Below are positions 11,557 through 62,466 of a stretch of 64,000 nucleotides of DNA, in pieces. The position numbers and the translations under genes were made by a program. Below the pieces are notes generated by a model, which worked only from the letters and a program-made list of their open reading frames with translations, was not told the origin of the DNA and searched no databases. The stretch spans positions 107,446,001 through 107,510,000 of the forward strand of contig NC_043003.1 of assembly GCF_006345805.1 (NCBI RefSeq), read 5' to 3'. The DNA comes from Octopus sinensis (taxonomy: Eukaryota). Each line of letters opens with the position of its first letter. Position 1 is the stretch's first letter.

Positions 11557-11946
11557 TACAAGCACACACACAGGTCATCAACATCATCATGCTTGCTTGG
11601 CTCAGATAGATTTTATTGAGGCAGAATTTCTGCAGCTGGATGCTCTCCCTGTCGCCAACCCTCTCCTCTTCTTTTCAAGGAAGCTAACATTTGCCAAGAA
11701 CTAGAATGTTCCCGCAGAATGTTGGAAATAAGAGACCCTGCTTATATGACAGTGGCACTCATTTACAACTATCACACAGATGTCAAGACAAAAACACACA
11801 CTCACACACACAACACATACATTCATACATGTTAGCACACAGAAAGCTATAATAAAAGATGCTTATCCAAGGGTTACATGCAAAGAAGTTGACCCCAGAA
11901 ACATTTTGTTGGGAAGCAAATGTCGTGCCACACAGTGTTGCCAGTA

Positions 11947-12400
<454 letters not shown>

Positions 12401-12526: not shown

Positions 12527-13836
12527 ATCATCATCATCATCATCGTCGTTTAACGTCCGTTCTCCATGCTAGCATGGGTTGGACGGTTCGACCGGGGTTC
12601 TGGGAAGCCAGAAGGCTGCACCAGGCTCCAGTCTAATTTGGCAATGTTTCTACAGCTGGATGCCCTTCCTAACGCCAACCACTCCGTGAGTGTAGTGGTG
12701 CTTTTTACGTGCCACCTGCACAGGTGCCAGGCGGGGCTGGCAACGGCCACGGTCAGATTGGTGTATTTTATGTGCCACCGCACGGAAGCCAGTCGAGGCG
12801 GTTGCTGGCATCGGCCACGAGCGTGATAGTGCTTTTTAACGTACCACCAGACCAGGGATCCTGGCTGGTTCATTCGATTTCGATTTCGCTTGCCCCAACA
12901 TGTCTTCACAAGCAAAGGGGGTTGGCAAGGGTGCCTGTCGTACGGTCGCATTGGAGTATTTTACGTGCCACGGCCACGAGTCGGATAGTGCTTTACGTAC
13001 CACCAGACCAGGGATACTGGCTGGTTCAATTCGATTTCGATTTCGCTTGCCCCAACATGTCTTCACAAGCAAAGGGGGTTGGCATGGGTGCCTGTCGTAC
13101 GGTCGCATTGGAGTATTTTACGTGCCACGGCCACGAGTCGGATAGTGCTTTACGTACCACCAGACCAGGGATCCTGGCTGGTTCAATTCGATTTCGATTT
13201 CGCTTGCCCCAACATGTCTTCACAAGCAAAGGGGGTTGGCATGGGTGCCTGTCGTACGGTCGCATTGGAGTATTTTACGTGCCACGGCCCCGAGTCGGAT
13301 AGTGCTTTTTACGTACCACCAGGCCAGGGATCCTGGCTGGTTCAATTCGGTTTCGATTTCGATTTCGATTTCGCTTGCCCCAACATGTCTTCGCAAGCAT
13401 GGGGGGTTGGGATGGGTGTCTGTCGTCGGATGAGGTTCTATATCGACTTCGCTTGCCTCAACCGGTCTTTGTGTCCAAGGGAGGAAAGGCATTCATAAGT
13501 GGGCTGGGCTCACTTGTCCTGCCTGGTCTTCTCACGTACAGAATATTTCCAAAGGTCTCGTCTCTGGTCATTTCCTCAGTGAGGCCTAAAGTTCGAAGGT
13601 CGTGCTTCACCACCTCGTCCAGTTTTCCTGGGTCTACCTCTTCCACGGGTTCCCTCAACTGCTAGGGATTGGCACTTTCTCACACACCTATCTTCATCCA
13701 TTCTCGCCACATGACCATACCAGCGCAATCGTCTCTCTTGCACACCACAACTGATGCTTCTTAGGTACAACATTTCTCTCAAGGTGCTAACGCTCTGTCG
13801 AGTATGTACACTGACATTACACATCCATCGGAGCAA
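12527..13836 (-). mobile_element. RTE-clade LINE, 5'-truncated 3' end (copy 1 of tandem duplication)
   Basis: Minus strand MLRWMCNVSV...RLRWYGHVARMDEDRCVRKC...RGRGRPRKT; 3' UTR; (GAT)n tail. Confidence 0.9.
12841..13380. repeat. ~157-bp tandem repeat (x3.5) in the RTE 3' UTR
   Basis: gtaccaccag(a/g)ccagggat recurs at 12841, 12997, 13154 and 13313; the same array recurs 1366 bp downstream. Confidence 0.9.
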
Positions 13837-13892: not shown

Positions 13893-15202
13893 ACCATCAT
13901 CATCATCATCGTCGTTTAACGTCCGTTCTCCATGCTAGCATGGGTTGGACGGTTCGACCGGGGTTCTGGGAAGCCAGAAGGCTGCACCAGGCTCCAGTCT
14001 AATTTGGCAATGTTTCTACAGCTGGATGCCCTTCCTAACGCCAACCACTCCGTGAGTGTAGTGGTGCTTTTTACGTGCCACCTGCACAGGTGCCAGGCGG
14101 GGCTGGCAACGGCCACGGTCAGATTGGTGTATTTTATGTGCCACCGCACGGAAGCCAGTCGAGGCGGTTGCTGGCATCGGCCACGAGCGTGATAGTGCTT
14201 TTTAACGTACCACCAGACCAGGGATCCTGGCTGGTTCATTCGATTTCGATTTCGCTTGCCCCAACATGTCTTCACAAGCAAAGGGGGTTGGCAAGGGTGC
14301 CTGTCGTACGGTCGCATTGGAGTATTTTACGTGCCACGGCCACGAGTCGGATAGTGCTTTACGAACCACCAGACCAGGGATACTGGCTGGTTCAATTCGA
14401 TTTCGATTTCGCTTGCCCCAACATGTCTTCACAAGCAAAGGGGGTTGGCATGGGTGCCTGTCGTACGGTCGCATTGGAGTATTTTACGTGCCACGGCCAC
14501 GAGTCGGATAGTGCTTTACGTACCACCAGACCAGGGATCCTGGCTGGTTCAATTCGATTTCGATTTCGCTTGCCCCAACATGTCTTCACAAGCAAAGGGG
14601 GTTGGCATGGGTGCCTGTCGTACGGTCGCATTGGAGTATTTTACGTGCCACGGCCCCGAGTCGGATAGTGCTTTTTACGTACCACCAGGCCAGGGATCCT
14701 GGCTGGTTCAATTCGGTTTCGATTTCGATTTCGATTTCGCTTGCCCCAACATGTCTTCGCAAGCATGGGGGGTTGGGATGGGTGTCTGTCGTCGGATGAG
14801 GTTCTATATCGACTTCGCTTGCCTCAACCGGTCTTTGTGTCCAAGGGAGGAAAGGCATTCATAAGTGGGCTGGGCTCACTTGTCCTGCCTGGTCTTCTCA
14901 CGTACAGAATATTTCCAAAGGTCTCGTCTCTGGTCATTTCCTCAGTGAGGCCTAAAGTTCGAAGGTCGTGCTTCACCACCTCGTCCAGTTTTCCTGGGTC
15001 TACCTCTTCCACGGGTTCCCTCAACTGCTAGGGATTGGCACTTTCTCACACACCTATCTTCATCCATTCTCGCCACATGACCATACCAGCGCAATCGTCT
15101 CTCTTGCACACCACAACTGATGCTTCTTAGGTACAACATTTCTCTCAAGGTGCTAACGCTCTGTCGAGTATGTACACTGACATTACACATCCATCGGAGC
15201 AA
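13893..15202 (-). mobile_element. RTE-clade LINE 3' end (copy 2 of 1366-bp tandem duplication)
   Basis: Same ORFs offset by exactly 1366 bp; one difference spotted (YVPP vs YEPP). Confidence 0.9.
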
Positions 15203-20262: not shown

Positions 20263-21385
20263 CATGGTGTGTAAGATATTTGAGGACAGATTTATGTTTA
20301 TAAAAAAGCAGATATATAATAAAAGATAATAACTTTATTTATCAAAAATGCTTTCAGGATAAAAATAAACCTTCTTTTCTATAATGTTATTCAATAACGC
20401 CATCTTCAGCTTTAACAACTGCTTCTATATGAGATCTAAATCATCTACATACTCGAATCAAATGGTCCTGGTTCATTTTGAACATTACTCTGACTATGGC
20501 AGCTTGCAAAGAATTTTGAGTTATGAGCGTGATTATCGTTCGCTCTCTCTCTCTCGTTCTCTCAACAACTCTCCATGTGTAACAGTCCAATGATTGAGAT
20601 CTGGTGAATTAAGAGGCCAAATGTTAGGGGTTATATGATCATGAAAATTTTCGACCATCTATTCTTTAGTTACTAGAGCCATGTATAATAGTGCAGTCTT
20701 ACTGAAACACATAAGGCCCCATTGCATACACTGTCTATTCAGGGTTTAACAATAGTTTTCAGGACCTGACGGTAGGTGGGAGAGTTAGCTCTAAGGCCTT
20801 GTGGAAAGAATTAAGGTGGCATAACTTGTCCTTCATAGCTGACAAGAAATACCAAATCAAATCTTCTTCAGCTGGATTTTTCAGTTTGTTCAAGATACTT
20901 TTAGATTTGATGTAGTGATTTTCTTTTGCTTTTTCTGACAAATCAAATAAGATATATATCTGATGTCTTCGTGGACAACATTTCTAACTGTTCCTTCTGA
21001 CACATGGAGATCTTTTGCAATTGAACTCATGGACTTTCTGGGTTTGTAATCAATGGTCTGTTGAACTTGGTGGATAAATTCAGGTGTTCTGATGATTTCA
21101 GAGCGTTTAGAATGCATTTGATGCTTTGATACTGGTGATACATTTTCATCTGCAGTCTCTAACTCCTTACAAACTTTGTAGATGAAAGATCTGGCAACTT
21201 TTAAAAATTGAGATATTTCTAAATCGCTATGCTCGGCCATTACAACCACAATAACAGCATGTCTCTTTATTTCTTGAGTAAGCTGAGGGTCTGCCATTAT
21301 TAAATTCTGAAACAAAGTTTATACAGTGTTGCACGTTGTTCAATATCCTCAGACCAAATCGCATCACTTTTCCATGTTGTGTAGA
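20263..21385 (-). mobile_element. maT/DD37D-type Tc1-mariner relic with internal deletion
   Basis: N-terminus QEIKRHAVIV...SIAKDLHVSEGTVRNVVHEDIRY; minus-strand IWPLNSPDLN motif near 20600; C-terminus DHLIRVCR*FRSHIEAVVKAEDGVIE* near 20390-20480. Confidence 0.8.
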
Positions 21386-31199: not shown

Positions 31200-34100
31200 C
31201 ATGAGACCTTCATGTACCATTCGGTGTTGCTACATGGTTTTACTTCACAAAGACTTTTTAGCAACTGCCATTTGGTGCATGAGAGAGTTCGATGCAGCTG
31301 CCCTTATCTGCACCTCCTGCCGTGAAGTTGGTTCATCTGGGATACCTGACAGGAAGAGATCCAGTTTCATTTTAAAGACATCTGCATCCACCCCATGCAG
31401 GTCTCTTAGGTTCTTCAGGAGGATATTGAAGAGCTGTGGGCCTCGGAAGCCCAGGCTATCACAGTATCTTGTCCTACATCTTGATGGCAAATTTTGGTGT
31501 CCTAGGCACCACGCAGTGGCGCCCAGTTCTGGCATTTGTGTAACTCTTGATGCCAAAGTTTGGGACAAGTCCCTCCAGGATCTTCCAGATGTATATTATG
31601 GCATATCTTTCCCGCCTACACTCCAAGGAATATAGTTTCAATCTCTTGAGTCTTTCCCAGTAGCTTATATTCTGCATAGAAGCTATCTTCTTCGTGTAGT
31701 TACGTTGGATCGCCTCAAGTTCTGTGATCAACTTGACACTGGATGGTGACCATAACTGAGAGCAATAGTCAAAGTGGCTTAGGACAAGTGTCCTCCAGAG
31801 GACCATCATGGTTTCTTGTTCTCTTGTTCTAAAGGTTCTGAGAATCCATCCGGCCAGTCGTCTACATTTCATTGCCAATTTAGCAATATGTACACGAAAG
31901 GTTGCGTCATCACTCATGTAAATACCCAGGTCACGCACTGATTGTGCCTCTGGGATTGCAATTCCTCTGGGTCCAGTGTATTCATTGGGTATTGCATTTA
32001 GTTTTGCATGCTGATAGTATAAAGCTTGAAACTTTTCAGCATTGAACTGCATGCTATTCTTTTCAGCCCACTTGTATATTTTGTCCAGCTCACATTGCAG
32101 GCGTTTAGTGTCCTCAGGGTTTTGTATTGCCTGTGAAACTTTTGTATCATCTGCATAACTTGTGATCGTAGCTCTCTGCGTGGCTGAGGGCATGTCTGAG
32201 AGGGCCATTATGAACAGTAGTGGTCCCAAAACAGTGCCCTGCGGAACACCGCTCACTATTTGCGTGTTAATGGAAGTTGGCTACTACCACCTGACTTCTA
32301 TCTTTCAGAAAGTCATGAAGCCATTCTCCCAGTTTTCCAACTATGTTGAGATCACGCAGTTTGTGACATATTCCATGATCGACTTTATCAAAAGCCTTTG
32401 CAAAGTCGAGATATATGACTTCCACATTTGAGTGGTTGAGCAGTCTTTCAGTACCCAGTCATAGTGTTGTAGGAGCTGAGTTAAACAGCTTCTCCCTGGT
32501 CGGAAACCATGTTGGGTGTCGGGCAGCAAGTCATTTTCTTCAAGGAAGGTGATCAGTTTCCTTCTGACTATTCGTTCCATGACCTTGCTGATGTGTGAGG
32601 TCAGAGAGATAGGTCTGTAGTTCTTGGCCTCCGCTCTGCTACCTCCTTTATGAATAGGGCATATTTTACCTTCCTTCAGTTTTCTTGGAAGTTTGCCAGC
32701 TGCAAGGAAGCTCTGAAAGAGGAACTGCAGTGGTCTTGCTAGGACTCTCTTACATACTTTTAGGAGGATTGCCGGGAATCCATCGGGGTCAGTAGCTGAG
32801 TCTGTTTTCATTTCATCTATAGCCTTTATTACATCGTCTTCCTTTATATCGATGTAATTTATCGTCGCCGCCTCTGATTTTATATCTGCAGTGGTAAAGA
32901 AGTCAGTTGGATTGGTGATTTGGAAATGCCCAAGGGGTGGAGTGAAAACACTCTTGAATTGCTCATTCAGTATTTCACTTACCCTCATTGGTTTTCCTGT
33001 GAGTGTGCCATCCTTTTCAAGGAGTGGCCCTATCCTACAGCGCACCGTAGCTGTTTCTTTGGCATACCTGTAGAAAGCTCTGGGGTTAGATTTTATGTTG
33101 TCTATAGCCCAGGCTTCTTTGTCTGCTCTTTCCTTTTCATGGGAGAGTTGCAGACATTTTTCAATTTCCAACAGTTTTATTTTCAGGCGGGACTTTTCAT
33201 TGCTTTCAATTTGTTTGTTTAGGCGATTTGAAATTTTTGTATGCCGTCTCATTAAAATTTTCCTCTCTCTGGGGATTTTGTTCTTGTGTACAGTGGCCTT
33301 TCTCTCTGGGACACATTTGTAGCATATGGCTTGCATTACAGACATGAATTGTTGAAGTTTCACGTCGATATCTGATGAGGAGAGACATTCAGGCCAGTTT
33401 TGTTTGAAGATCTCTTTCTCAATTTGTTTCCAGTTTGCCTTATGGTAGTTCAAGCTGGAAAGATTCTGAGGGTTTCTTGTAGGCTGCATGTCCGTGCTCT
33501 CTTTTGGCCCGTACATGGTCAGCTCTACCATATTGTGATCCGAGAGTAGTGTCGGTGTCACTTTCACATTATGGATGAGATCCATATTATTTGTGAAGCA
33601 GAGATCCAGTGTGTTACCTGCCCTGGTTGGTTGGAGTATTACTTGCTCCATGTACAGGGTGTTGGTGAGGTTCAGGAGGGACCTCGCCTGTCCTCATTCA
33701 CATCTTGTCATTCCTGGGAGAGAAAGGCCCTCGGGCCATCTGACATTGGGTAGATTGAAGTCTCCCATAAGAAGTACACTTATGTGTTGTTCTAATGTGA
33801 TTAGAACTTCTTCTATTTTTATAAGGCAGTCTTCAAACTTGCCTACATGGCTTGGGGCATCTGGAGGGCGATATGTAGCACACACAACTATATCAAGTTG
33901 CCTTATATGTACAATTAGTGTGTCACACACCGAGTTTGAGTATGACAAAAGGACCTGGGGTGTGAGGTCCTCACGGATGTACATAGCAACTCCTCCATGA
34001 CTCCTTTCTTTTCTGTTGGTCCGTAGTACAACATACTGTGGTATGTGTAATTCCGCATCTGCTATGTCCGGTTTCAGGTGCGTTTCCGTAAGTGCTATGC

Positions 34101-34667
34101 ATAAGGCTTGATTGCATGCAACAAAGTCTCTCAAGAACGGGATTTTTGTCCTGTTGCTGAGTGCTTGCAGTCCTCTGATGTTCAGTAGGAGCATCGAGGT
34201 GAGGTGTATGTTGTTGCCGGCGGTGTCCATCTTGGGTCTGTTTGCTGTGGTGGTCTTGTATATTGTGGGTAGTCCCACCTGCGAGCTTGGGTTTGATGAA
34301 GCCAGGTTAGCTGCTGTACAATCTTTTGTGCCATGCACAAAAAAGATTCTTGCTCAGCAGCTGCCCTTTCAACATCATGTTGGCGGTTTGTAGCACGCAC
34401 CACATCTGCGTACCTCCGTTTTGGGGCAGGTAGTGCGTGGTCCATCCCTTTTCCTTTTGTTGATGGTTTGTTTCTTATCTGTTTCGTGTCTCTGCGGGAG
34501 GGTCCCCGATGTGCAAAGCGGCAGCCTGCACCTTCCTCTCCATGCCAGCAGGTACCTCTCAGGTAGAACCTACACACCCGTGTGCGCTGTTTGTTTCCAT
34601 CCTTTGTGGTTCCACTTCTATTCCTGGCTGTTTCACCCTTTGGTCCTGCTTGAGCTTTTCCTTTAGT
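31200..34667 (-). mobile_element. CR1-group LINE, near full length, frameshifted
   Basis: ORF1 with CCCH-like CRFYLRGTCWHGEEGAGCRFAH; AP endonuclease (LNIRGL, ETHL, GGVAMY, GDFN); RT with SGVPQGTVLGPLLF and YADD. Confidence 0.9.
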
Positions 34668-34877
34668 CACCCCCACCTGGTGGACACCCGGGAAGTGAAC
34701 CCAAGTGCAAGTGCTCCTACCAACAACAAAGGCCATGGAGATAAAGAATCCAAGGAAGAAATAGAGGGAGGAAGAACTAAAACAAGGACTAAAAGAACTA
34801 AAAGAAAAGCTCAAGCAGGACCAAAGGGTGAAACGGCCAGGAATAGAAGTGGAACCACAAAGGATGGAAACAAACAG
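34668..34877 (+). mobile_element. Inverted 5' piece of the CR1-like ORF1
   Basis: 34797-34877 is the reverse complement of 34587-34667 (AQAGPKGETARNRSGTTKDGNKQ is read on both strands). Confidence 0.8.
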
Positions 34878-35923
34878 TCAATACGAATAGAAGCGACGAG
34901 AGGGGGCATCCCTGACGGACCAAACGTGCGATGTCGAAAGGTCTCGATAGATGTCCATTTACGTGAATTACCGAACGGATGCCTCTGTACAAAGCGGCTA
35001 TCCAGCCACAGAAGACAGGACCGAAACCAGCCGCTCCGAGGACAGCCTCCAAATATCGATGGTCTACCCTATCGAAAGCTTTCGATTGATCCAAATTGAT
35101 CAGCGCCCCACCCATGCCAGGTTCCTTAACTACCCTGTCTATGATGTAGCGCATCAGGTGGAGGTTGTCATGGATGCTCCGGCCCGTCATGGCGCGCGTT
35201 TGCGCCTTGTCGACCAGTTTCTCGATGACAAGCGCCAACCTCTTGGCTAACACCTTGGCCAAAATTTTCAAGTCTGCATTAAGCAGAGTGATTGGCCTAA
35301 AGTTATCTATTACATTCCCCTTTCTTCAGTTACGTCTCCTCGGCTCACAAAACCAGGAATGCTCCCGTTTTGCTGCCAGTTGCAGAACACCGCTGCCAAG
35401 ACGTCTCCAAACAAGTCTGGCATACAACTGTAAAGCTCGTAGGGTAGACCATCCAAACCCAGCGATTTGTCCCTCGAGCATTCTGCCATCGCGTCCTGCA
35501 CTTCCGCCGCTGTGATGGCACCTTCGCAACACCCTGTCTCTCTTGTCGAGAGTCGTGGTAGTCTGTGTAGGTAGGCACTGAAGTCCACCCTACGTTCTTG
35601 CCCGCTACTTGTCCCGAACAGTCGGGCAAAATGCTGTTGAAAAGCCTCACGTATTTTACTTGGCTCGAGCAATTCGCGCCCCTGTTCATCTACCAGAGAC
35701 CGAATGGTGACTCTGTTGCCCTGTTGTGTCTCGGCCTCTCTCGCAGCTCCAACACCTTCGTTCCTTAGAGCACACATCCTAGCTCTGACAACACACCCTT
35801 CGTGTTTGGCATTGAAGTGTTGGTTGAGGGCCAACCTCGCCGCCAAAACGTCGAATGTGATGCTGCTTCTAATTGCCTCTTCTAGCTTCTTAACTAGCTC
35901 ACCCTCTACTCTATTTCCATCTA
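34878..35923 (-). mobile_element. Tx1/L1-clade LINE internal RT fragment
   Basis: GLDGLPYELY, KILAKVLAKRL, GRSIHDNL, LDQSKAFDRVDH, VRQGCPLS; cut off before the YADD motif at the junction. Confidence 0.85.
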
Positions 35924-35929
35924 TGGCTT

Positions 35930-35942
35930 GGATGGATAGATG

Positions 35943-36025
<83 letters not shown>

Positions 36026-36042
36026 GGATGGATAGATGGCTG

Positions 36043-36078
<36 letters not shown>
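35930..36078. repeat. (GATA)n microsatellite
   Basis: tagatagata run. Confidence 0.95.
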
Positions 36079-36079
<1 letters not shown>

Positions 36080-36674
36080 CATGACTGATCTACTTAAGTT
36101 TTCTCCACTCCTGTCCAACTTTCCTTTTATGTTCAGGGTCTCCCTGGAATGTTTTGACACCAAATAATATTGCACCAACCCTTTTTATTTTAATTTTCCT
36201 TCTCCTGGTGTTTATATCATTGCCTTGTTTGCATGCTGAGTGGCTGACAAGTACAGAATATGACCTACAAGATGAAAACAACACAGCACCTGTTTTGCAG
36301 TTGCTGGAATTTATTTTGCAGGAGAATTTTTTTCAGTTCTGATTCTGCCTACCCATGTCACTTTGTGGATCTTCTGTAGGCATTATTGATGGGATGTGTG
36401 CAGGTCTTCAGTTCCTTTACTGCCATTATTGGTGGGAAATGTGTAGTTTTTTTTAGCCACCTTTATTGTCATTTTCCACGTTTCCTTATTATACAGAAAG
36501 ATAAAATATGTACTAAATTCAAATAAGTAGCAGAAGCAATCTTACCACCTAAACCTTTGAAGGTGGTGTCTTAATATGGTTGTAGTTTAGTAACCAAAAG
36601 CAAAGACTATAAACTCTCAAATAGTGTTTTCTGGTCATGTTACTGCCATTTGAATTGTCCTAAATTAAAGTTAA

Positions 36675-38464: not shown

Positions 38465-40436
38465 GATACATGAAGGAGTCATACCCAATGACTGGTGTAG
38501 CAGCATAATAGTCAACTGCTACAAAGGTAAAGGTGATGCCCTAGATACAAATAATTACAGAGGTATCAAGCTGTTGGATCAGGTAATGAAGGTTACGGAG
38601 AGGGTCATAGCCCAACTGATTAGGGAGAGAGTCAGCTTGGATGAGATGCAGTTTGGTTTCATGCCAGGGAAAAGCACCACTGATGCCATATTTCTGGTGA
38701 GACAGCTGCAGGAGAAATACCTAGCTAAAGATAAGCCCCTGTACCTGGCTTTCGTTGACATGGAGAAAGCTTTCGACAGGGTCCCCTGATCCCTTATCTG
38801 GTGGTCAATGAGGAAACTAGGGATAGATGAATGGTTAGTGAGAGCTGTGGAAGCCATGTATAGAGACGCTGTAAGTAAGGTGAGGGTTGGCAACGAGTAC
38901 ACTAAAGAATTCAGGGTAGAAGTAGGGGTCCATCAAGGTTCAGTCCTCAGTCCCCTCCTATTTATCATAGTCCTCCAGGCAATAACGGAGGAATTCAAGA
39001 CAGGATGCCCCTGGGAGCTCCTATATGCTGATGACCTTGCTCTAATTGCTGAGTCACTATCAGAACTGGAGGAGAAGTTTCAGGTGTGGAGACAAGGATT
39101 AGAATCAAAGGTCCTTAAAATCAACCTAGCTAAAACCAAAGTCCTAATATATAGGAAGGCAGGCAAATCACAAACGCCTTCAGGTAGATGGCCCTGCTTG
39201 ATCTGTAGAAAAGGTGTAGGTAGAAACTCTATAAGATGCACCAAGTGTAAGCTATGGACGCATAAGAAGTGCAGCAATGTCAAAGGAAGGCTAACTGGGA
39301 AGATAGTTTTTGTACGTGGCAGATGCTCAGGAGCAATAAACACTGAAAATGCTCAGAGACCAACTTCTGCCACATTCCAGGGAGAAAAACTAGAAATTGT
39401 TGATAGCTTCCGTTACCTAGGTGACCAAGTCAGCAGCGGGGGCGGGTGTGCTGAAAGTGTAACTGCTAGAGTAAGAATAGCCTGGGCAAAGTTCAGAGAG
39501 CTCTTACCTCTGCTGGTGACAAAAGGCCTCTCGCTCGGAATAAAAGGCAGACTGTATGACGCATGTGTACGAACAGCCATGCTACATGGCAGTGAAACTT
39601 GAGCCGTGACTGCTGAGGATATGCATAAGCTTGCAATAAATGAAGCCAGTATGCTCCGATGGATGTGTAATGTCAGTGTTCATACTCGACAGAGTGTAGG
39701 TACCTTGAGAGAAGAGTTGGACCTAAGAAGCATCAGTTGTGGTGTGCAAGAGAGATGTTTGCGCTGGTATGGTCATGTAGTGAGAATGGATGAAGATAGT
39801 TGTGTGAAAAAGTGCCACATTCTAGCGGTTGAGGGAACCTGTGGAAGAGGTAGACCCAGGAAAACCTGGGATGAGGTGGGGAAGCATGACCTTCGAACTT
39901 TAGGTCTCACCAAGGAAATGACCAGAGACTGAGACCTTTGGAAGTATGCTGTGCGTGGGAAGACCCGGCAGGACAAGTGAGACCATAACCTGTGGCCTCT
40001 ACCTGGGACGTAGCCAGCCCACTTATGCATATCTTTCCTTCTTGTGACACAAACCCTACTTGTGAAGACCTGTTGAGGCAAGTGAAAATCAAAATCGAAA
40101 TCGATCAACACCAATGGAAATTGTGGCACATAAGAGAACCATTTGAACGTGGCCGTTGCCAGCACTGCCCTGACTGGCCTCCGTGCCGGTGGCACGTAAG
40201 AAGCACCATCCAATCGTGGCCGTTTGCCAGCCTCGTCTGGCACCTGTGCAGGTGGCACGTAAAAAGCACCCACTACACTCACGGAGTGGTTGGCGTTAGG
40301 AAGGGCATCCAGCTGTAGAAACACTACCAGATCAGACTGGGCCTTGCATGGCCTACTGCCTCCCCAGACCCCAGTTGAACCGTCCAACCCATGCTAGCAT
40401 GTAAAACGGACGTTAAACGATGTTGATGATGATGAT
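38465..40436 (+). mobile_element. RTE-clade LINE, 5'-truncated, RT pseudogene
   Basis: One reading frame with two premature TGA codons (38787, 39600); GVHQGSVLSPLLF, LLYADDL, RGRPRKTW; (GAT)n tail. Confidence 0.92.
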
Positions 40437-45862: not shown

Positions 45863-46517
45863 GGCAGCAATAACTTTCGGTCATGAGGGCTTATACATAC
45901 ATATTCCAGAAAGTGTCAGTTGATATTGCCAACAAGCTTTGAATTTATTCTTCTACTGGAAGAAGGTACTGGTGATGATTAGATTGCCTTCAATCTATTT
46001 GATGAGAATTAGGCTGCCATTTACAATGCATTTTTCAATGCCATTCTTTCTAATGATACCCTTATTACCTCATCCTCCTATCACATTAAAATCTCCAAGA
46101 TTTGCAGAATGTGACAGGGTGTGACAGAATGTGACTGATGAGTAACAGCGGGAAAGAAATGAGGCACACACACTCAGCTGGATACATAATGTCACTTTTT
46201 GTATGAACAATGGAGCACAAATGAGTGGAGTGAAAAATGGGTGTAGTGAGTTTAAAAAATGAGTGACTTGAATGGACATATGATGTATATAGAGAATTAG
46301 GGTAAGCAGAATGATATTCACAATGTTAAGATAAATGAAAACTCCTTGATTGAAATGACAGACTCTCTCTACACAGCAGATACAAAGGGGAATTGTAACT
46401 GATAACTGGTCAAGGGAAATAACTGAAATATATTGTTTTCCAGAGGGGTAACTTGTTTCTGGAATCATTGTTTCTCACACTCATTTGACAAAGATTTTAA
46501 TCTAAAATGTTCAATAT

Positions 46518-46930
46518 AGGCGTAGGAGTGGCTGTGTGGTAAGTAGCTTGCTTACGAACTGCATGGTTCCAGGTTCAGTCCCACTGCGTGGCACCTTGGG
46601 CAAGTGTCTTCTACGATAGCCTCGGGTCGACCAAATCCTTGTGAGTGGATTTGGTAGATGGAAACTGAAAGAAGCCCGTTGTATATATGTGTATATATAT
46701 GTGTGTGTATGTATATGTTTGTGTGTGTCTGTTTGTTCCCCCAACATCGCTTGACAACCAGTGCTGGTTGTCAACCAATCCCTGTAACTTAGTGGTTTGG
46801 CAAAAGCAACAGATAGAATAAGTACTAGGCTTACAAAGAATAAGTCCTGGGGTCGATTTGCTCGGCTAAAGGCGGTGCTCCAGCATGGCCACAGTCGAAT
46901 GACTGAAACAAGTTAAATTATTAAAGAATA
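46518..46930 (+). mobile_element. CORE-like SINE (family B; octopus OR2-like by inference), full length
   Basis: tRNA-like head (tggctgtgtggt; ggttcagtccc); CORE-like caccttggggcaagtgtctt; (TG/TA) spacer; 3' tail. Confidence 0.85.
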
Positions 46931-47469
46931 TCTCTTAAATCATGCACTATTAGAACACTAGTGTTAGACTAAATGTCTTGCATAATCCAGTTATGGACCT
47001 TTACATTCTGAGTTCCAAAATTTGTGTCAATATTTGAGAGGAGGGGAAGAGGTCCATAAAATAAAGTACCAGTTAAGTACAGGACTAAATTTAATCAATG
47101 ACACTCCCCTTCTCAGATATGTGGACATGTCCCAATGTTAGAGATTAGTATTCTTAAAATCATAATAAATTTACACACCCCAACCGAAATGCAGGAATTA
47201 CCTAAAACTGTTTTGCTGAGATCATTATCGTTATTTAGCAGCCATATGGTATGGATTGGACAATTTGACAGGTCAGAGGATGGTGTTGAGCTCCAGTGTC
47301 TGTTTTAGCATGGTTTCTATGGCTGAACTGGATGCCACTTTTAATTCCAACCACTACACAAAGAGTACTGGGTACTCTTTTTATAGGAATGTCATGAAAA
47401 CTCATGACATCAGCACTAGTGAGGTTGCCAAGTACCATACAAAACAAGTTCCTTTCATTGAGATGGAGA

Positions 47470-47975
47470 GAATACCCTCCATCAGGCATTTGCCATATTC
47501 TGAATGCCTTACTTCCTTGGGCATGGATACATTGAAACTCTGACATCTGGCAGCTGACTTGGCAGACACCCATAAAATTATTAACCATCTTACAAACAAT
47601 AACTCTGAGCACCTTTTCAAACTCCATCTGTCTAACACCCGTGAACATGTTTACAAAGTCAGAAAACAGCACAGCTCCTTCCATGACTTTTGGAAACATT
47701 TTTTCATGCTAAGAGTTGCTGAAGCATGGAACAAACTGCCAGCATCAGTTGTTAGTTGTCGGAGCACTGCATCCTTCAAAACTTCCATGTTTCCTGAGAT
47801 TCGCCAACACTACACATGATTTTCTCCCCTCTATACATATGCAAGCATGTATCTGACTCATACATTGTTCACTTTCCAAACATTTGTACATTACTGCATA
47901 TACTTTATACGCACTTTTGACAAGTTGTGGTGCACCTGAACACTGTATATAATAATTTCATTATTATATTATAAT
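47470..47975 (+). mobile_element. CR1-group LINE 3' fragment
   Basis: RIPSIRHLPYSECLTSLGMDTLKL...KHFFMLRVAEAWNKLPASVV...SFKTSM, followed by an AT-rich tail. Confidence 0.8.
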
Positions 47976-48282
47976 ATTGAGGGAGGAGGCTTTATGCCAA
48001 ATGTTGAGAGGCATGAGTATGGTAGGAGGATAGGAACAGTTGTCTTGCTATGGAGGAGACACATGGCTATCCCAGCTGGAAAAAGAGAAAAGATAATGGT
48101 GATACTTTCAAGGTATAATAGGATGAATGTGAAGGGAGTGGAGAAAAGAGGAACAGGTGAGGGAGATGGACAAAGGAGCAGGTAAGTTTGCATGAGTGAG
48201 AGGCAACAGATGATTAAAGGCAAGTGAAGCAATGAAAAAAAAATGATAATGATTACAAATTAAAAGAAAAAGATCAAATTTA

Positions 48283-48578
48283 TTAAAGTTTATATAAGTG
48301 TCTGAGAGAATAAATTAGGGCAGCAAATTTATCATTATTCTTAAAATGAGACCTCCACATGAATTCGGTTAATAAAGACTGAACTGTAACTTTGTCACGA
48401 GTTCCATGTTTTTGTCGCAATTTTCTCTTGACTTCTAACCACATCTTGTCAATGTTTCTGGTGTGGATTTCAGAATCATTTGGATCTTCATAATCTATAT
48501 ATTCATGAGTATATATCCCTTGCTGGATCTGGTCGATTTGGAGATATTCAGCCCATACATCAGACACAATATGGGTAC
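48283..48578 (-). CDS. Merlin/IS1595-family transposase-derived gene, exon 2
   Basis: ttttcattgcAG acceptor; (G)THIVSDVWAEY...HTRNIDKMWLEVKRKL...LLTEFMWR...HLYKL-stop; phase 1 matches exon 1. Confidence 0.88.
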
Positions 48579-51384
48579 CTGCAATGAAAATAAGAATTTT
48601 TAAACAGTCATTAAACCTCAGATATACAGAAGTGCTGTATAATGTTGTGCTGTTCATGCACTTTCTGGGGAACACCATAAACACAAGCACTACTGGGAAT
48701 TAAAACTGAATTATAGATGCAGTTCACACAATGAAAATAATATTAGCAGTCTTAGAAACAGTGGCCTTCTTTACCAGCAAAGCATAACTATTGGTACAGG
48801 GTCAGTTGAGTGATTAAAAAGTAGGTTTAGTAATAACATGGTTTCAGGTTTGAGCTCACAGTAACGTACCTTAGGCAAGTGTACCTTCTATCATATCTCC
48901 AATCAGCGACAGAATTGTGAGGGAAATTTGGCAAGATGGAGACGAGTGTGTAAAGTTGTTGAAAGGACTGCTCCTATTGTTGGGCAGGAAGACTTAATCT
49001 GTCGCTTTTGGGTATCTTTAGCGGAGTCAACTATGTTGCCATGGATTCATTTTCCTCCATATCCCACCCGAGAATACTTTAATTCTTTACACTTCATTAT
49101 GTTTATTTGCTTATTCTCTGTCACACAGAAAAAGAAAATACCACTGTCCAAAATATTCAAATTTTGTTTTCAGTGTTTATCTTAGAGCTAAAGAAGTGTT
49201 CTGTTTGTTATATGGTATTCTTACTTCCAAACAGAACAGGATTGGAGTTATATTATTTTTCTGAGGGACTGTTCATTTTAAACATGAGATCTTGTGAATA
49301 AACCAAAATGGGTACAAAAAAATATTGGTTTGCTGTTGGACTTAACAATCAGAAGAATTGTTGAGAGTCAGGGCTAAAAATCCCCAAGTAGTCTTACTAT
49401 TTGTGAATTCCTCAAAAACTCTAACTGAGGCAAAAGAGAGCAATTTTTTTCCAAAGTAGTAGCAACAGTAATGATTCTTTACATGAGATGAGCTAAAATA
49501 CCATCAAGCTAATTGAGACAGTTATTTCTTTAGAATCAATGCAGGAATCTTGGAAGGTGATATGCTTGTACCATTACCATTTACCATCTGTCTAAAATAA
49601 GCCCTTCACACTTCAACTGACAAAACAAAGGAGCCAAGGAACCCAGACTCTGTAACAAAGTCCATGTCACTTGCCACAGCAATAATAAGTCTAAGATTAT
49701 GCTGATGATATTGAGCTTCTCTGCAGATGACATCTCAGAAGTGAATGTTAAAATGAGGATGACAGTCCTGAATCTTTTTTCCGTCCAGTGTATCACAAAT
49801 GACACACAGGACATAATTCCCTGCATTTAAGTTTCATTTATGCTAAACATTCTTAAATTTTCTCAACCACCATAGTAAATTGGTACTTAAGAAGGAAGAG
49901 CTTTATATGACTCAGAATGTACAAAACAAGGGCAAACAAAAAGTCTGAAAACAAGCATGGACGTTTAGGACAAACTTATGAAAATGTTTAGGACAGGCAA
50001 AGAGTTAACATTATAAGGAATTTCTGTAGAATTTCTCAGAAGGCCAAGTTGATAATTTGTACACAGATCATGATGGCAATTTCATTGATTTTCTTTATTT
50101 CAAAACATTGTATCCTACATTATCATAGTCCACATAACTGTCAGAAATAATTGTGAAATTTTCTGGGAAAATATCATTAAAAATGCTAAATCACCCTAAA
50201 GATTTACACTTAAGGAGGTGGGAAGACACTCTCTGAAATTTATCTTTTTAACACAATTTTATGGGACTATAAGAAATATGTATATGTTTTAAGCATTACA
50301 GATTACAATTCTGAAGAAAAAAAATTAATAAATAAATAGGAATAAGAGGAGGTGGCATGATCTTCCTTCTTTTTCTTTAATTTTTCAATTTAGACATTTT
50401 CCAAATTTTTTGGCAGATTTATGTTATACATATTTTTCAAATAACCAATCACAGATGTTTAACCATAAAATTGAACAAATTTTCAAAAAAAGTCAAAAAT
50501 GAGAAGTTATAGAAAGAAAGGAGGTAACTTCCATTTGCCTCCACTACCATCTTTTTCTCTTTTTGTGTGTGCAGGATTATAATACTATGCAATAACATAC
50601 ACATCCAAAGAAATTACAGTTTTTTGTTATACTAGATAATCTGCAATGCTATTCTTTTAGAAATGTCCTTAATCTCTTAAGATAAGACTGAAGATTATCA
50701 GAGTCATTGGAATGCCAGATAGAAGAATGTCTTGTGGAATTTGTTCTGGTTCTCTTCACTCCAAGTTAGTTCAAATCCTGCTAAAGATCGGTTTTGTTTC
50801 TCATTCTTCTGGGTTGATAATTAAAGTAGCTGTTAAGTACAAGGTTGATTTCCTCTCTCTTTCTGAATTGGCAATGTTACACTGTGATAAGAAAGGTCAC
50901 AGGGAATCACTCACACTGTTTCTTCTTCAGGAATTGTACAATGACTAGCAACCCCTTCTCAAAGAAAAAAATGACATGTTATTGGAAGCATAAGAGCAAT
51001 CCACTGTTCACCTAATTAAGTCACGAATAACACCAATGAAATGATGACCATTCCAAAATACCGCCCCCCAAGAGGATTGACTGCTATTTCTTGTGGATTG
51101 AACGAACTCGTTTTTCGAATATGGTCGATGAGGGTTAACGAGTTCTCGTTAAACATTTAATATAACTATGAGATAAAAGTAATCATGTAGTTATAACTTT
51201 AGGCGGTGATGGTGAATGGAAAGAAGAAATTGTCAAATACTTGTTCTATACTGGATATATATAGGACAAGTGGCAATGTGTGAGAAGAAACGACTTTCCC
51301 CCCGACTTATTAGGCGCAGTCATGGATATGTGATTAAGAATTTCACAACCAATATTTTTTCTTTCTTTTTCTTTATAAGTGTTC

Positions 51385-51481
51385 AGTGTCACCAAGCGGA
51401 GCCGTGGGCAAGGATCTTCTACCGCAGCTCCGGGTTAACTAATGACTTGTGAGTAAACTTGGTTGAAACTGGAAAGCTCGT

Positions 51482-51543
<62 letters not shown>

Positions 51544-51745
51544 TGCGTGAGGGTGTGCGCTGGTCTCTGTATTTGCCACCCACCGCATTACAACCGGTGT
51601 TGGTTTGTTTACGTCCCAGTAGCATAGCGGTCCGGCTAAAGAGACTGATAAAATAAGTACCGGACTTGAAAATAAGAGCTAGAGTCGATTTCATCGACTA
51701 AACCCTTCCATATGACTGCAGTCCAATGACTAAAACAAGAATTAT
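51385..51745 (+). mobile_element. Degenerate family B SINE inside the intron of the Merlin-derived gene
   Basis: acttgtgagtaaacttggttgaaactggaaagc...(TA)n...gtccaatgactaaaacaag. Confidence 0.6.
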
Positions 51746-51857
51746 TTTTACACGAATGCATGATATGCAGATGGAAAAAAAAAACCCATCTGAATAAAAA
51801 TAATTTTTACATGATATGACTACTATTACTTCAGGTATGTATAGAAATTAACCATAC

Positions 51858-52563
51858 CAGGTAAAATCCAACGAGTGACAATAGCTTCGAAAGCGTCTTT
51901 ATTCTGATGTTCGATAGGCACCAGAAAACATTTCCCAGTTTCGCGTTCAATTCCTCCAAACACCATGTGTCCTTCTTTTTCGTGTTTCTTTTCATTGTGT
52001 TTCGATTTAAAAAATGTAAACATGCCTACTTCAACAATTATTGGTTCACCTGAATCTAAATCGAATCCACCAATTTCAGGTGGATCGTCACCTAATTCAG
52101 TCGGATGATCTTCCAGAAACCATTCGAGTCGCTCTCGGATGAAATGACACCAGTCTGATATAGTTCGTTCACCAACATCTGTTTCGTGCGACATCTCGAT
52201 TTGTTGGTGTTCTCTTGACCATAAGTACATTAACCATATAAGTTTTGGTAGTGATATGTGGCTTCCAGCGAATATCGAACCATCGCGTATTGACATAATA
52301 AACCTGTCCTTTGCACATCCCCACTGCCTCCCGTCACAACTTTGCTGATAGCGGACAACTGTACACGGGTCACCACAAGTGGGACATACAGTAGAATTGC
52401 TTATGAGTCTGTGTTTTGCCAGCCAAGTAACTGCTGCATCAATTGAGTTAGTCTGCAACACAATGTCAGCGAATGTCCATCGTTCTTGCTTGATTTCGTT
52501 GTCGCTCATAACATTGTTGCTAATACTGGTCGGGTTTCGTGGCCGTCCAACACGACGAGGCAT
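51858..52563 (-). CDS. Merlin/IS1595-family transposase-derived gene, exon 1
   Basis: 706-nt open frame from ATG: AT-hook-like RRVGRPR; Zn-ribbon-like CPTC...C...WGC; HTH-like region with TISDWCHFIRE; GG...IIVEVGM; VFGGIERETGKCFLVP; WILPG followed by a GTATGG donor. Confidence 0.88.
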
Positions 52564-53071
52564 CGTCGAGGAAATGAATGCGGATTAAAATAATAAAGTT
52601 CACATAAAGTAAGGTTTCAAACGCCGCATTATAATGGAACACAATATTTACAACCTACGAAGCGATAATTGCGAGAACACTTCAAGAGTTTTTCGGTTTC
52701 AGCAAATACAATTAAGGAGTAAATAATAAAAACTAAACTAAATGAAGTTTCAAAGTGTTAGTTTCGTATTGGTGCCTTTTCAAATATTTTTTCATCAGTT
52801 TATTATAAATGCTACCAATATGTCAAGTTAAAGGATTAAAAAGTGGTTTTAACATTAATATCATAGCAATGAAAGATAGCCAAATATCATTATAATTACT
52901 ATAACTAATTATTAATAATATACAATAACTTTACGGAGATGTACTTGCGTAGCCAGTGACTTGATCTGAGATCGTGCGCGGGAACGAAAACAATTGCAGC
53001 GTGGAAGGTGTTTATAAGCCATTTAAGAAATACACAAAAACCGTTAGATTCACTTCAACATTTAAATTTAA

Positions 53072-53235
53072 GGCGATCCTTCGGTATAAGTACCGGAAGT
53101 GGCTTTGTTTACATTTGTGAAGATAACAGAAACCCATTTCTCCCACCCCAAACCTTAACCCTAAACCTAACTGCCCATATATATAAATAAAACACTTTCT
53201 TGAAAGGTATCCGGTACTTATACCGAAGTTACGCC
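53072..53235. mobile_element. Merlin-type MITE (164 bp)
   Basis: TIRs GGCGatccttcggtataagtaccgga and tccggtacttataccgaagttaCGCC; TSD aaatttaa / aaattcaa (7 of 8). Confidence 0.8.
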
Positions 53236-54085
53236 AAATTCAATTAGTCAAAATATTTTCGTCGCTTTGAGACCGCGACCTGTTCACTGACAAAACTTCA
53301 TGCTGCATCTCTATACAATAACTGTTTTTTACAATCCGAATACATTTTGTTTTTTTAAACTTTGTATGAATGTCAGTCGCGTGTTGGGTATATTTAGATG
53401 GCGTACATGGCGGAGACGTACCTCCACCTTTTTTTTTTAACGGAAACCCAACCTTTCGACTATGTAGATTCCGATACTGAAAACAAATATTGGCAAAAAT
53501 TGCAACTTAAAATTTCAATCCTACTCTCATTTCTTCATTTTTCACTGAAAGTGTTCATTCTACAAAACGAAATTTGAAAGTTACTCGGAGTTTGATGTCG
53601 CGTTCTAATATACTGCAATAGACATTTTTCCCCTTTGCGGCATATTAGGATATCAGAATAGTGTCTGTTTTGTATACTTAATAACTGCTATTTCTAGCAT
53701 ACTAAACAATCACGTTAAGGACGGACTGGCTTTCAGTTTACTTAAAAAAGTAAACGACATGGACCGCACCCACTTTCAGGGGGGCGGGTCTACAGAAAGC
53801 AACGTTTTCGATTGCGGAGATTCCGAATCTGCAAAAGAATTCAGCATTTCAACATTTTGACCTCCCCAACCAATTTTCCACTTTTTTTAAAGAAAATTTT
53901 TGGGGTCGAAATTCGTAGAAAAAATTTTCAGACGAAGAATAAGTCCGGGGTCGATTTGCTCGGCTGCAGTCAAATGACTGAAACAAGTAAAAGAGTAAAA
54001 GATATTACAATCGGACACGTGTTATTGCTGAGTAAGTAACTTAACAAGGTATCTACCCAAGTTTCAAATCTCGGTTCCTTTACGT

Positions 54086-54103
54086 CACACACACACACAC
54101 ACA

Positions 54104-54134
<31 letters not shown>

Positions 54135-54300
54135 CAGAGTTTTTTTTTCGGTTTCCCGTCTTCAAAGTCCACTCGCAAGGCTTTGATCGGCGCAGTGCTA
54201 ATAATAGAAAGGGTTTGCCCAAGGTCTCATGCAGTATGACAGAACTCGAAACTATGTGGTTGAGAAGCAAACTGCTTACTATACATCCATGCCTGCACCT
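54086..54300 (-). mobile_element. Family B SINE 5' half, degenerate
   Basis: Reverse complement of the family B head and CORE-like region. Confidence 0.65.
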
Positions 54301-54401
54301 ATAATATCTAGTATTACTTGATAAAATCAAATGCAGTTGAGAACCAAATGGTTTGTTTCACCTTAAACGTAATTGAATACTTACAATATTAGTGCATGAA
54401 T

Positions 54402-54564
54402 TATTTCGTCTGTCTTTATGTTTTGAGTTCAAATTCCGCCGACAACGACTTTGCCTTTCATCCTTTCGGGGTCGATAAATTAAGTACTAGTTGCGTACTG
54501 GGGTCGTTCTAATCGGCTGGTCCCCTCCCCCAAAATTTCGTGCCTTGTGCCTAGAGTAGAAAAG
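54402..54564 (+). mobile_element. Family C SINE variant, 5'-truncated, with a 17-bp TSD
   Basis: aatattagtgcatgaat is duplicated at 54385-54401 and 54565-54581. Confidence 0.85.
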
Positions 54565-60574: not shown

Positions 60575-62466
60575 TATTATAAAAGGCAGATTTTATCTGC
60601 CTCCCTTTGGGAGTTATACAAATCTACAATATAGGATTCTTCAATTACAATTACCTAGCATTTTTAAGAGTACAATGCATCGCGTCATGCCAGGTCCAGT
60701 TTTTAAAATTTTAACTCCAATTAAGCAAAATTTACAGAAAACTCACATTTTGGTGTGTGTGTCAAATGCTTTTCTTAGTCTGGTTTACAGCACACGCAAA
60801 CGCACACACACAGTGTGCAACGAATAAAATGAAAGTAAATAGCGACAGAGTGATTTGAGGAAGACTAAACTGAAAGTATTCTGCCTATGACGCTGATAGA
60901 TACATGAGTAAAATGTATGGGAAGCTAAGAGCTAAGAGTGAGTGAAAATGTTCTTGGAAGAGAGTAAATAGCGAGAGAGAGAGTGATTTGAGGAAGACTT
61001 TACATTAAATAACCGTAGTGGCTTGTGTTAGTAATAAAGTAAACATACACTCATACATACATACATACATACATACATACATACATACATACATACATAC
61101 ATACATACATACATACATACATACATGCATACATACACACACACACACATACACACATACATACATACACACACACATACATACATACACACATACATAC
61201 ATACATACATATACATACATACATACATACATACATACACACACACATACACACACACACAGTATTGAAGCTTGAGAACAATCAGATACATTTGCAACAC
61301 ATCTGTTGAAAATATTATTGTTCACACACATACATATACATATATACATACAGACAGACAGACAGATAGACACACACACACACACACACATGATCCAGCA
61401 TGGCCACAACCTCAAGGCTGAAACATATAAAAGAATAACAGAATATAAATGTGTGCAAAGTACAAGAAATATTAATGCAGTATATGGGGATTGGACAATA
61501 AGCGTAAGGCAGTGTCAATGGTGGTTCCAGAAATCCCGAGCCATAAACTACAGCCTAGAAGACGAGCCTCATCCTGAAAGATCTGTAGAACTCGACAAGG
61601 ATATCCTGAAAACCCTGGTGGAACAAAATCTCAACGTAACTGTTGAGGAACTAGCAGAGAAGCTTGGATTTGGTCATTCAACCATTCATTGAGACCTGTG
61701 TGCTATCGGAAAAGCCAGCAAATTGGGTCAATGGGTTCCTCACGAACTTTCCGAGGCTAATTGCATGCAGGGAGTGAATGTATGCTTTTCTTTGCTGTCA
61801 CATCTCACCACTACTGCGCTATGTATATCTATATATATAAAACTGTAGTTGTGTGAGTGTCTGTCCCCTTCGATTTAGATACCTAACTACTCCCACATTT
61901 TGCGGTGCAGTTTAACCAAATTCGGGTAGCTTATAGTCGTGATTCATATCGAGCCCGTCCGAGTATTAGCGCGCGTCTACGATGAGTCTACGATTTTAAA
62001 AATAATTTAACATCATTTTTTATTCCATTTTAATGCATAATTTTTCGTGTGTCGATGGCGGCGGAGTTGGCGTCCACGCTCACACCTGCACCTGTGGGGA
62101 AGGGAGTGTAAGGAAATCAACGTCGTAATGCGTTGTCAAGGAGACCAGCGTTCTTTTAGAACAACAACGACTTCATGGCTTGAAGACACCAAAACAGAAA
62201 TGGCTAAGAAAGCGTCTACATGAGTCTACGATTTAAAAAAAAATTTACCATCGTTTTTTTTCCATTTTAATGCATTTTTTCTCTATTATATAAGGGAAGT
62301 AACTCTCTAAAAATGTCTACGATGAGTCAACGATTTTTAAAAAATTTACCATCATATTTTTTCCATTTTTAATGCATTTTTTGCTATTTTTTGGCTATAA
62401 CACTCTAAAAATGCTTACATAGTTATTTCCCTTACAAACCCGAGCAACGCCGGGCGATACTGCTAG
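60574..62466 (+). mobile_element. Composite Helitron, unit 2 (module A, mariner fragment, module B)
   Basis: Module B has its own A/TCTATATATATAAAA 5' end at 61828 and a cccgagcaacgccggg...CTAG 3' end at 62466. Confidence 0.8.
61380..61810 (+). mobile_element. mariner transposase N-terminal fragment
   Basis: RNINAVYG...SVRQCQWWFQK...SLEDEPH...TVEELAEKLGFGHSTIH*...KLGQWVPHEL (WVPHEL mariner motif). Confidence 0.85.

Follow-up and report, generated by a model that had tools for sequence, protein, structure and literature searches.

A stretch of 64,000 nucleotides from Octopus sinensis (contig NC_043003.1, positions 107,446,001 to 107,510,000 of the forward strand; called the window below) contains on its minus strand two open reading frames (ORFs) that together resemble a Merlin/IS1595 transposase. 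The locus raises the question whether it is a transposon, a decaying remnant of one, or a gene that now belongs to the host. A preliminary description of the window had proposed that the two ORFs are exons of an intact candidate domesticated gene with a remodelled catalytic triad, of a kind not known to have been characterized in cephalopods. It is well supported that this gene, here called gene A, is a host-resident, immobile and selectively maintained descendant of a Merlin transposase, domesticated at the level of a family. Gene A is the earliest branch of an octopod family that goes back to one Merlin transposase, and its product would be a putative non-catalytic DNA-binding regulator.

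Joined by a phase-1 GT-AG splice, the two ORFs form a stop-free frame of 333 codons, exact to the base as proposed. Translation starts with the ATG at 52563 on the minus strand, and the two coding exons (Table 1) add up to 706 + 296 = 1002 nt with zero stops. The donor reads TTACCTG/GTATGG at 51858/51857 and the polypyrimidine-AG acceptor reads TTCATTGCAG/GTACC at 48579/48578 (the slash within a sequence marks the exon boundary). Splicing restores the Merlin motif W-I-L-P-G/T-H-I-V-S-D across the exon junction. In exon 1 the protein starts with a basic stretch that holds a GRP motif, followed by a three-helix region, a Zn-ribbon-like region and a helical linker. An RNase H-like core is divided between the exons, its first half lying in exon 1 and its second half, together with the C-terminal helices, in exon 2. 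Within the intron there are a (TA)n run and, at 51381-51502, the decayed remains of a dispersed repeat about 185 bp long.

The 333-residue product is exactly XP_029638916.1 of O. sinensis (LOC115214035, "uncharacterized"), and CAI9726406.1 of O. vulgaris, also 333 residues long, is identical to it. Their counterpart in O. bimaculoides is XP_014783956.1, with differences at 9 of 333 residues. The RefSeq and GenBank models of gene A use exactly the predicted splice. The gene is thus not unrecorded: RefSeq and GenBank already list it as an uncharacterized or ISXO2-like domain protein. Junction-spanning transcript contigs were sought among the Logan public read assemblies, and none was present in the contigs examined. 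Logan contigs from a third octopod (its A orthologue and a lineage called P0014, both discussed below) run past the donor into the intron, as do the Logan proteins P0225, P0232 and P0233; these contigs and proteins are therefore genomic.

Homology to Merlin transposases was confirmed by a match to DDE_Tnp_IS1595 (PF12762), which covers residues 187-312 with 44.4 bits, above the curated cutoff of 27 bits (E = 2.3e-11). The catalytic columns were assigned from an alignment with about 40 Merlin-type proteins. Residues 180, 242 and 279 of gene A fall into the columns VEI-D-ES, S-D-GW and NV-E-NMW, respectively. Gene A has the triad G180-D242-D279 at the positions where about 35 transposon-like relatives have D-D-E, and the codons of all three residues lie exactly where the preliminary description had placed them. 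The VNH motif that it had reported missing is indeed gone: in the alignment, V(V/I)H has been removed by a 4-residue deletion. An AlphaFold2 model of the product, built from a 42-sequence alignment, has a predicted local distance difference test score (pLDDT) of 86.7 and a predicted template modelling score (pTM) of 0.84. In this model residue 180 lies on strand b1 (176-184), residue 242 just past b4 (238-241), and residue 279 at the start of a long helix (277-292), so that the triad positions are predicted to be at the canonical sites of the RNase H fold. The best PDB folds found by Foldseek were the N-terminal and catalytic-core domains of retroviral integrases; a search of the family profile against PDB sequences gave no meaningful match.

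In the Zn-ribbon-like region, C60, C63 and C83 are invariant in 42 of 42 aligned sequences, and three beta strands are modelled at residues 68-91. At the position of the fourth Zn ligand, residue 86, those transposon relatives that were inspected have Cys (as CxxC in P0016 and P0040); gene A and its paralogue D have Asp, and the other paralogues His. A Pfam scan of the gene A product did not detect Zn_Tnp_IS1595 and gave only a sub-threshold match to DUF7419. The RRVGRPR sequence that had been likened to an AT-hook is present at the N-terminus. RRVGRPRNP is conserved in the A orthologues, with Val instead of the usual Arg before Gly. The GRP core is ancestral in the related Merlin clade, whose N-terminal consensus is M-x-x-G-R-P; A, C and P0014 still have it, and B, D, E, F, G and H have lost it.

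Table 1. Coordinates of gene A, of its paralogues and of other transposon-derived pieces. Numbers without prefix are positions in the window; prefixed ones are genome positions.
Feature	Position	Strand	Remarks
Coding exon 1	51858..52563	minus	706 nt; residues 1-235 and first base of G236
Phase-1 GT..AG intron	48579..51857	minus	3279 bp
Coding exon 2	48283..48578	minus	296 nt including stop TAA at 48285-48283; residues 236-333
RRVGRPR, AT-hook-like GRP motif or basic cluster	52537..52557	minus	residues 3-9; from sequence
Zn-ribbon-like region	52264..52395	minus	residues 57-100; from alignment and model
Codon 180, GGC = Gly (VEVGM)	52024..52026	minus	first catalytic Asp position; from alignment
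Codon 242, Asp (IVSD)	48559..48561	minus	second catalytic position, kept; from alignment and model
Codon 279, Asp (NIDKMW)	48448..48450	minus	catalytic Glu position; from alignment
Paralogue B	C7:107,514,297	plus	just past right end of window; intact
Paralogue C	C7:107,529,132	plus	just past right end of window; TGA stops in both exons
Paralogue D	C7:89.7 Mb		from genome search
Paralogue E	C15:54.76 Mb		from genome search
Paralogues F, G, H	C14:12.17-12.21 Mb		tandem
LINE (long interspersed nuclear element) endonuclease and reverse transcriptase (RT) pieces	31474-36089		split over several frames; fragmented retrotransposon without long terminal repeats (non-LTR)
Separate RT piece	38790-39602		followed by a weak PHD-finger match, sub-threshold (21.6 bits, cutoff 24)
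Mariner-type helix-turn-helix fragments	61276-61692; possibly 20890-21318		

Orthology and selection were examined in O. bimaculoides. Its locus (CM046607.1) is colinear with the window from 57730 to 36078, about 21 kb, with a non-coding identity of 79-93% (85-93% in most blocks). Paralogue B is the head-to-head neighbour of gene A in both species, and the locus is thus a syntenic orthologue with the same divergent neighbour. The coding sequences of the two species differ by 21 synonymous and 10 non-synonymous changes, which gives a non-synonymous divergence (dN) of 0.013, a synonymous divergence (dS) of 0.09-0.11 and a dN/dS ratio (omega) of 0.11-0.15. This ratio is far from 1, and neutrality is rejected by a binomial test with p = 1.6e-8. 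The intron is 86-90% identical between the species, its divergence of 10-14% being close to dS, and has many indels; the coding sequence has no indel and no stop, and the splice sites are intact in both. G180 is present in both species, which means that the measured constraint acted after the loss of the catalytic Asp. The O. bimaculoides intron is 4100 bp long as compared to 3279 bp in O. sinensis; the extra ~900 bp (L031 ~11431-12366), which includes a copy of the ~185-bp repeat, is a lineage-specific insertion.

An intact ORF with a Pfam transposase domain could also belong to an autonomous, intron-containing Merlin transposon that is mobile now or was so very recently, and the genome does hold many Merlin copies, some of them mutually identical. 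A pair of terminal inverted repeats (TIRs) bracketing gene A was sought within 46500-54500 and none was found, in agreement with the preliminary description. One inverted pair (46515-46603 and 54215-54303, 73% complementary) was considered and rejected, since both arms belong to the ~185-bp dispersed repeat, which has many copies in the window and occurs at other loci as well. No TIRs were found in the 1.5-kb flanks of the seven other paralogues, and when the two flanks of each paralogue were compared with each other by blastn in inverted orientation, a single weak repeat match was returned, in G. The best non-self match to gene A in a search of the 2.7-Gb genome has 58% amino acid identity; as this is the maximum in the genome, near-identical dispersed copies are absent. 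The mobile Merlins of the genome are intronless and only 28-34% identical to gene A. What the flanks of the paralogues have in common are scattered interspersed repeats and, in some pairs, about 70 bp just 5' of the ATG, which argues for gene duplication rather than transposition. Merlin transposons have TIRs that start with GG, between target-site duplications (TSDs) of 8-9 bp. Gene A has no TSDs either, its position is orthologous in another species and its first catalytic Asp is missing. A live transposon is therefore excluded.

Gene A was not found to be the singular gene that had been described. The genome has at least eight paralogues with this two-exon layout (A-H), or at least nine when the P0014 lineage of the third octopod is counted. 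A, B and C form a cluster, in which B and C (C7:107514297-107534738) lie 4-25 kb past the right end of the window, head-to-head with A. In 8 of 8 loci the intron is at the same LPG/T position and in phase 1, with donors GTATG(G/A) and acceptors (Y)nAG; the intron lengths differ. Splice sites and phase have stayed the same among paralogues and orthologues over dS values above 1. Because all paralogues share this intron, domestication and intron gain took place once, in the ancestor of the family. The paralogues are 59-63% identical to A in pairwise comparison, with pairwise omega values of 0.10-0.25. Their dS ranges from 0.45 (F/H) to more than 1 (A versus the rest), compared to about 0.1 between the two Octopus species, and so the duplications are several-fold to more than ten-fold older than the species split. 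In the tree the family forms one clade within the Merlin transposases, with a stem of 0.51 and a support of 100 in the Shimodaira-Hasegawa-like approximate likelihood ratio test (SH-aLRT). A branches off first and D next, followed by (B, C, E) and (F, G, H).

One-to-one orthologues in O. bimaculoides and O. sinensis exist for seven of the eight paralogues, and O. vulgaris has entries for A, B, E and the F/G/H cluster. Paralogue C is intact only in O. bimaculoides (XP_014783957.1) and is a pseudogene in O. sinensis. When the family profile was searched against 1.84 billion representative proteins, the whole family fell into one cluster at 50% identity, with 648 bits, separated by a gap from the next best matches, ordinary Merlins with 261 bits or less, among about 6,300 Merlin-like proteins in all. 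No named protein with more than 45% identity was found outside Octopus in a database that included Argonauta hians proteins. As far as the reachable data show, the family appears to be confined to octopods.

Some database entries and divergence values cut across the boundaries of these paralogues. The isoforms P0013, P0226 and P0229 (O. sinensis and O. vulgaris) mix paralogues; annotated isoforms join exon 1 of B to exon 2 of C, and exon 1 of G to exon 2 of F. In one O. vulgaris model paralogue E is cut after "NID" and fused to C2H2 zinc fingers. In F/G/H pairs and in A versus the others, the core and exon-2 part has a lower dS than the N-terminal part (0.42 vs. 1.43 in G/H). H of O. sinensis groups with G and not with H of O. 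bimaculoides. The lower core dS and this grouping suggest that gene conversion may have occurred among the tandem copies.

The changes around the active site are partly shared by the whole family and partly confined to single members. Throughout the family VEIDES has become VEID(V/I)T with loss of the Glu after the first catalytic Asp, V-x-H has been deleted by 4 residues, the catalytic Glu has been replaced by Asp (paralogue G has Ser or Asn at this site), and the fourth Zn ligand has changed from Cys to His or Asp. VEID(V/I)T, the loss of V-x-H and the Glu-to-Asp change occur in none of the about 35 relatives that keep D-D-E. The remodelled triad had been read correctly at every position, but the Glu-to-Asp change and the V-x-H loss turn out to be family-wide and only the D-to-G change is specific to gene A. 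B to H and the transposon relatives have VEID at the first catalytic site; A alone has Gly. Paralogue D has lost the second Asp (IVSG), and this change is fixed in O. bimaculoides too. The third site of G is Ser in O. sinensis and Asn in O. bimaculoides. Catalysis is thus not a conserved requirement in the family, as A lost the first Asp, D the second and G the third acidic residue. Three acidic residues, and a Lys seven residues past the third, are still present in B, C, E, F and H. With three acidic residues in five paralogues, the term non-catalytic cannot be extended to the family.

These five members are at the centre of another view, in which the family was domesticated yet remained a catalytic nuclease or recombinase. 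The D-D-D paralogues (B, C, E, F and H) would cut or join DNA, and A, D and G would be their dead hetero-oligomer partners. Paramecium PiggyMac with its inactive PiggyMac-like partners is a precedent for such an arrangement. Besides the retained acidic residues and Lys, this view draws on the RNase H-like core being the best-conserved region, on the canonical active-site scaffold that is kept in the AlphaFold2 model, and on the three losses having hit different residues in different members, each of which is under purifying selection. However, the Glu-to-Asp change, the loss of the Glu after the first Asp and the V-x-H deletion lie at or beside the active site in the whole family and in no D-D-E relative, and no substrate in the form of TIR-like sites was identified for a catalytic family. 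We regard this view as unlikely. Its most far-reaching form is a working domesticated recombinase in which the D-D-D members cut Merlin-type ends, for example those of the abundant miniature inverted-repeat transposable elements (MITEs) with TIRs starting with GG, and A, D and G act as targeting or regulatory subunits. If true, this would mean programmed or somatic DNA rearrangement, or transposon excision, of Merlin origin in octopuses; we consider it very improbable.

Sequences from a third octopod (contigs from runs SRR11869391 and SRR11869384) allowed us to date some of these events. They contain orthologues of A, D and E and the ninth lineage, P0014, which was sought in O. sinensis and not found there. 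The A locus of the third octopod is 83% identical to the window at the nucleotide level from the 5' flank through exon 1 into the first part of the intron, and its exon 1 protein is 91.5% identical. Its codon 180 is GAC (Asp), compared to GGC in Octopus, which indicates that the D-to-G change is recent and took place on the branch leading to O. sinensis and O. bimaculoides. Codon 163 has changed from GAA to TAA in 4 of 4 allelic variants, in contigs from at least two runs. Omega between the third octopod and Octopus is 0.10-0.14, and 0.08-0.09 downstream of the stop. No relaxation of constraint was seen past codon 163 in the third octopod, and with these values the nonsense mutation appears to be young. 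Stops in orthologues, which the preliminary description had counted as evidence against domestication, do occur in the third octopod and in paralogue C, whereas A has kept an open frame in O. sinensis, O. vulgaris and O. bimaculoides. The codon-163 stop, the death of C and the absence of P0014 point to birth-and-death turnover, in which members are individually dispensable. Such turnover fits a family involved in conflict or regulation better than one indispensable housekeeping gene.

The same findings could be taken to mean that gene A itself is decaying toward a pseudogene, its function lost when D180 became Gly and its intact frame being a remnant. The catalytic Asp was lost recently, the third-octopod orthologue has a premature stop, C is dead in O. 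sinensis, and the O. sinensis branch holds six of the seven non-synonymous exon-1 changes that could be assigned between the two Octopus species. Yet all of the divergence between O. sinensis and O. bimaculoides came after the D-to-G change and still shows the low dN/dS given above. Moreover, the coding sequence has stayed free of indels and stops and has kept its splice sites in both species, next to an intron that has diverged by 10-14%. Decay of gene A is therefore considered quite unlikely.

A non-catalytic DNA-binding role of the gene A product is plausible. Since the product would be unable to cleave or transfer strands by itself, its selected function is probably non-catalytic. Several observations weigh against such a role. 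Within the family, conservation is highest in the RNase H-like core, with a dN about half that of the N-terminal part and with near-invariant blocks (PEIGGFD, VFGGIERGTDKCFLVPIEH, ILPGTHIVSDIWAEYLQIDQIQQGIYTHEYIDY and the C-terminal helices), which would not be expected if DNA binding were all that counted. The five paralogues with D, D, D and the downstream Lys make catalysis in the family possible. The fourth Zn ligand is Asp in gene A, which makes metal binding by its ribbon uncertain. The TAA at codon 163 of the third-octopod orthologue, the pseudogenization of C and the absence of P0014 from O. sinensis count on the same side. Finally, A kept the Asp at the first site for most of its history, so that G180 was not the target of long-term selection.

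The comparisons show the following course of events. In the ancestor of the family, a transposase lost its TIRs, gained the phase-1 intron within the LPG/T motif and had its active-site region remodelled (VEID(V/I)T, V-x-H deletion, Glu to Asp). The gene then expanded, mostly into tandem clusters, giving the three copies on C7, the three on C14 and the single ones on C7 and C15, and the copies lie at fixed orthologous positions and evolve under purifying selection. Gene A lost its first Asp (GAC to GGC) later, in the ancestor of O. sinensis and O. bimaculoides. Its product is predicted to have the fold of a full-length transposase, with three-helix region, Zn-ribbon, helical linker and RNase H-like core. 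It may enter the nucleus by means of its basic N-terminus and bind DNA through its N-terminal domains, and would not perform metal-dependent cleavage or strand transfer alone. Its most likely role would be that of a sequence-specific DNA-binding regulator that acts on Merlin-type ends or MITEs, or on host genes. Homo- or hetero-oligomers may form through the core domain, which is very conserved.

Merlin transposases are the eukaryotic relatives of bacterial IS1595/IS1016. Compared to them in general, gene A has a similar length (about 320-335 residues in the group), the same domain order and a predicted RNase H-like fold. It is 37-45% identical to intronless Merlin ORFs of other invertebrates and of metagenomes. 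The shared motifs are WLA..L..N, C..C...W.C, GG, VE-, WVFGGIER, ILPGT-I-SD, GIY-H, HT-N- and W..-K, in addition to the N-terminal M-x-x-GRP. Unlike these transposases, gene A lies at a single locus without TIRs or TSDs and has a phase-1 intron. Its triad is G-D-D, the Glu after the first catalytic Asp and V-x-H are gone, and Asp replaces Cys as its fourth Zn ligand. Gene A is also syntenic between species and under purifying selection at the level of the host.

Merlin-derived genes have been proposed as domesticated in the protists Stentor and Symbiodinium and in the kinetoplastids Perkinsela/Bodo (PMC8101967). These cases resemble the octopod family in being conserved Merlin ORFs without TIRs or TSDs, some with a non-conserved DDE triad and some with segmental duplication and synteny (PMC8101967). 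O. bimaculoides is mentioned in that study only for the abundance of its Merlins, with 191 sequences. The protist hosts are unicellular, whereas the octopus family is found in an animal, with a shared intron and a measured dN/dS. A search of the literature found no paper on an octopus Merlin-derived gene family, and the only Merlin domestication candidates it found were those of protists.

New regulators and nucleases have repeatedly arisen from domesticated transposases; RAG1, CENP-B, PGBD and PiggyMac are examples. Multi-copy families of domesticated DDE transposases include the pogo-derived CENP-B, TIGD and POGK genes, the piggyBac-derived PGBD1-5, and Paramecium PiggyMac with its dead partners. 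The octopod family is like them in being immobile, duplicated and under purifying selection, with the triad kept in some members and lost in others. It differs from them in belonging to the Merlin superfamily, in being restricted to octopods as far as data show, and in having a main isoform without fusion to a host domain. Cephalopod genomes are known for their abundance of transposons and for lineage-specific expansions of gene families. The octopod family would be a clear animal case of Merlin domestication. Several of its traits are unusual. It was domesticated once, and then gained an intron and expanded in tandem; its catalytic core is better conserved than the DNA-binding end; different catalytic residues were lost independently in three members; and gene death is still going on. 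What is new is the family, its nesting among Merlins, the recent D-to-G change and the turnover; the protein itself was already annotated. The family gives cephalopod biology a defined set of lineage-restricted candidates for nuclear proteins, so far uncharacterized.

A further link between Merlin transposases and animal proteins comes from names in NCBI. The Hydra vulgaris Merlin-like proteins P0040 and P0248, which are 37% identical to gene A, are called "male abnormal protein mab-31(-like)" there. C. elegans MAB-31 is a nuclear factor of Sma/Mab TGF-beta ray patterning that, according to its 2010 description, resembles no protein outside nematodes (PMC2921377). The Hydra naming hints that MAB-31 may be related to Merlin transposases; C. 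elegans MAB-31 was not among the matches listed for the Hydra "mab-31" protein used as seed.

A second Merlin-like ORF with Gly at the first catalytic Asp (VVELGES) is located at C7:25422978-25423910 (L009). It is intronless and intact, encodes 321 residues, is 38-39% identical to gene A and forms an unresolved group with the family in the tree. No TIRs were found within its 1.5-kb flanks. A MITE with GGCGAT TIRs lies beside it (L009:3315-3767). This ORF may have arisen independently of the family, as another relic or domestication.

A 164-bp MITE is also found near gene A, at 53072-53235, about 510 bp 5' of the ATG. It has 26-bp TIRs that start with GGCGAT, and its flanks, AAATTTAA and AAATTCAA, differ by one mismatch and are likely to be an 8-bp TSD. 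In its GG start and its likely 8-bp TSD the element resembles Merlin transposons. A genome search gave 1219 first-look candidates, and the 40 of them that were scored gave 43 matches. Of the 43, 40 are full or near-full length (the shortest covers 16-164), with 82-90% identity apart from the element itself.

The other transposon ORFs of the window are all fragmentary, as had been described (Table 1). Two sets of ORFs at 12550-13498 and 13916-14864 are near-identical and lie 1366 bp apart; a single residue is different in one of the three ORF pairs, and the ORF that was tested had no Pfam match. This arrangement indicates a tandem duplication of a repeat.

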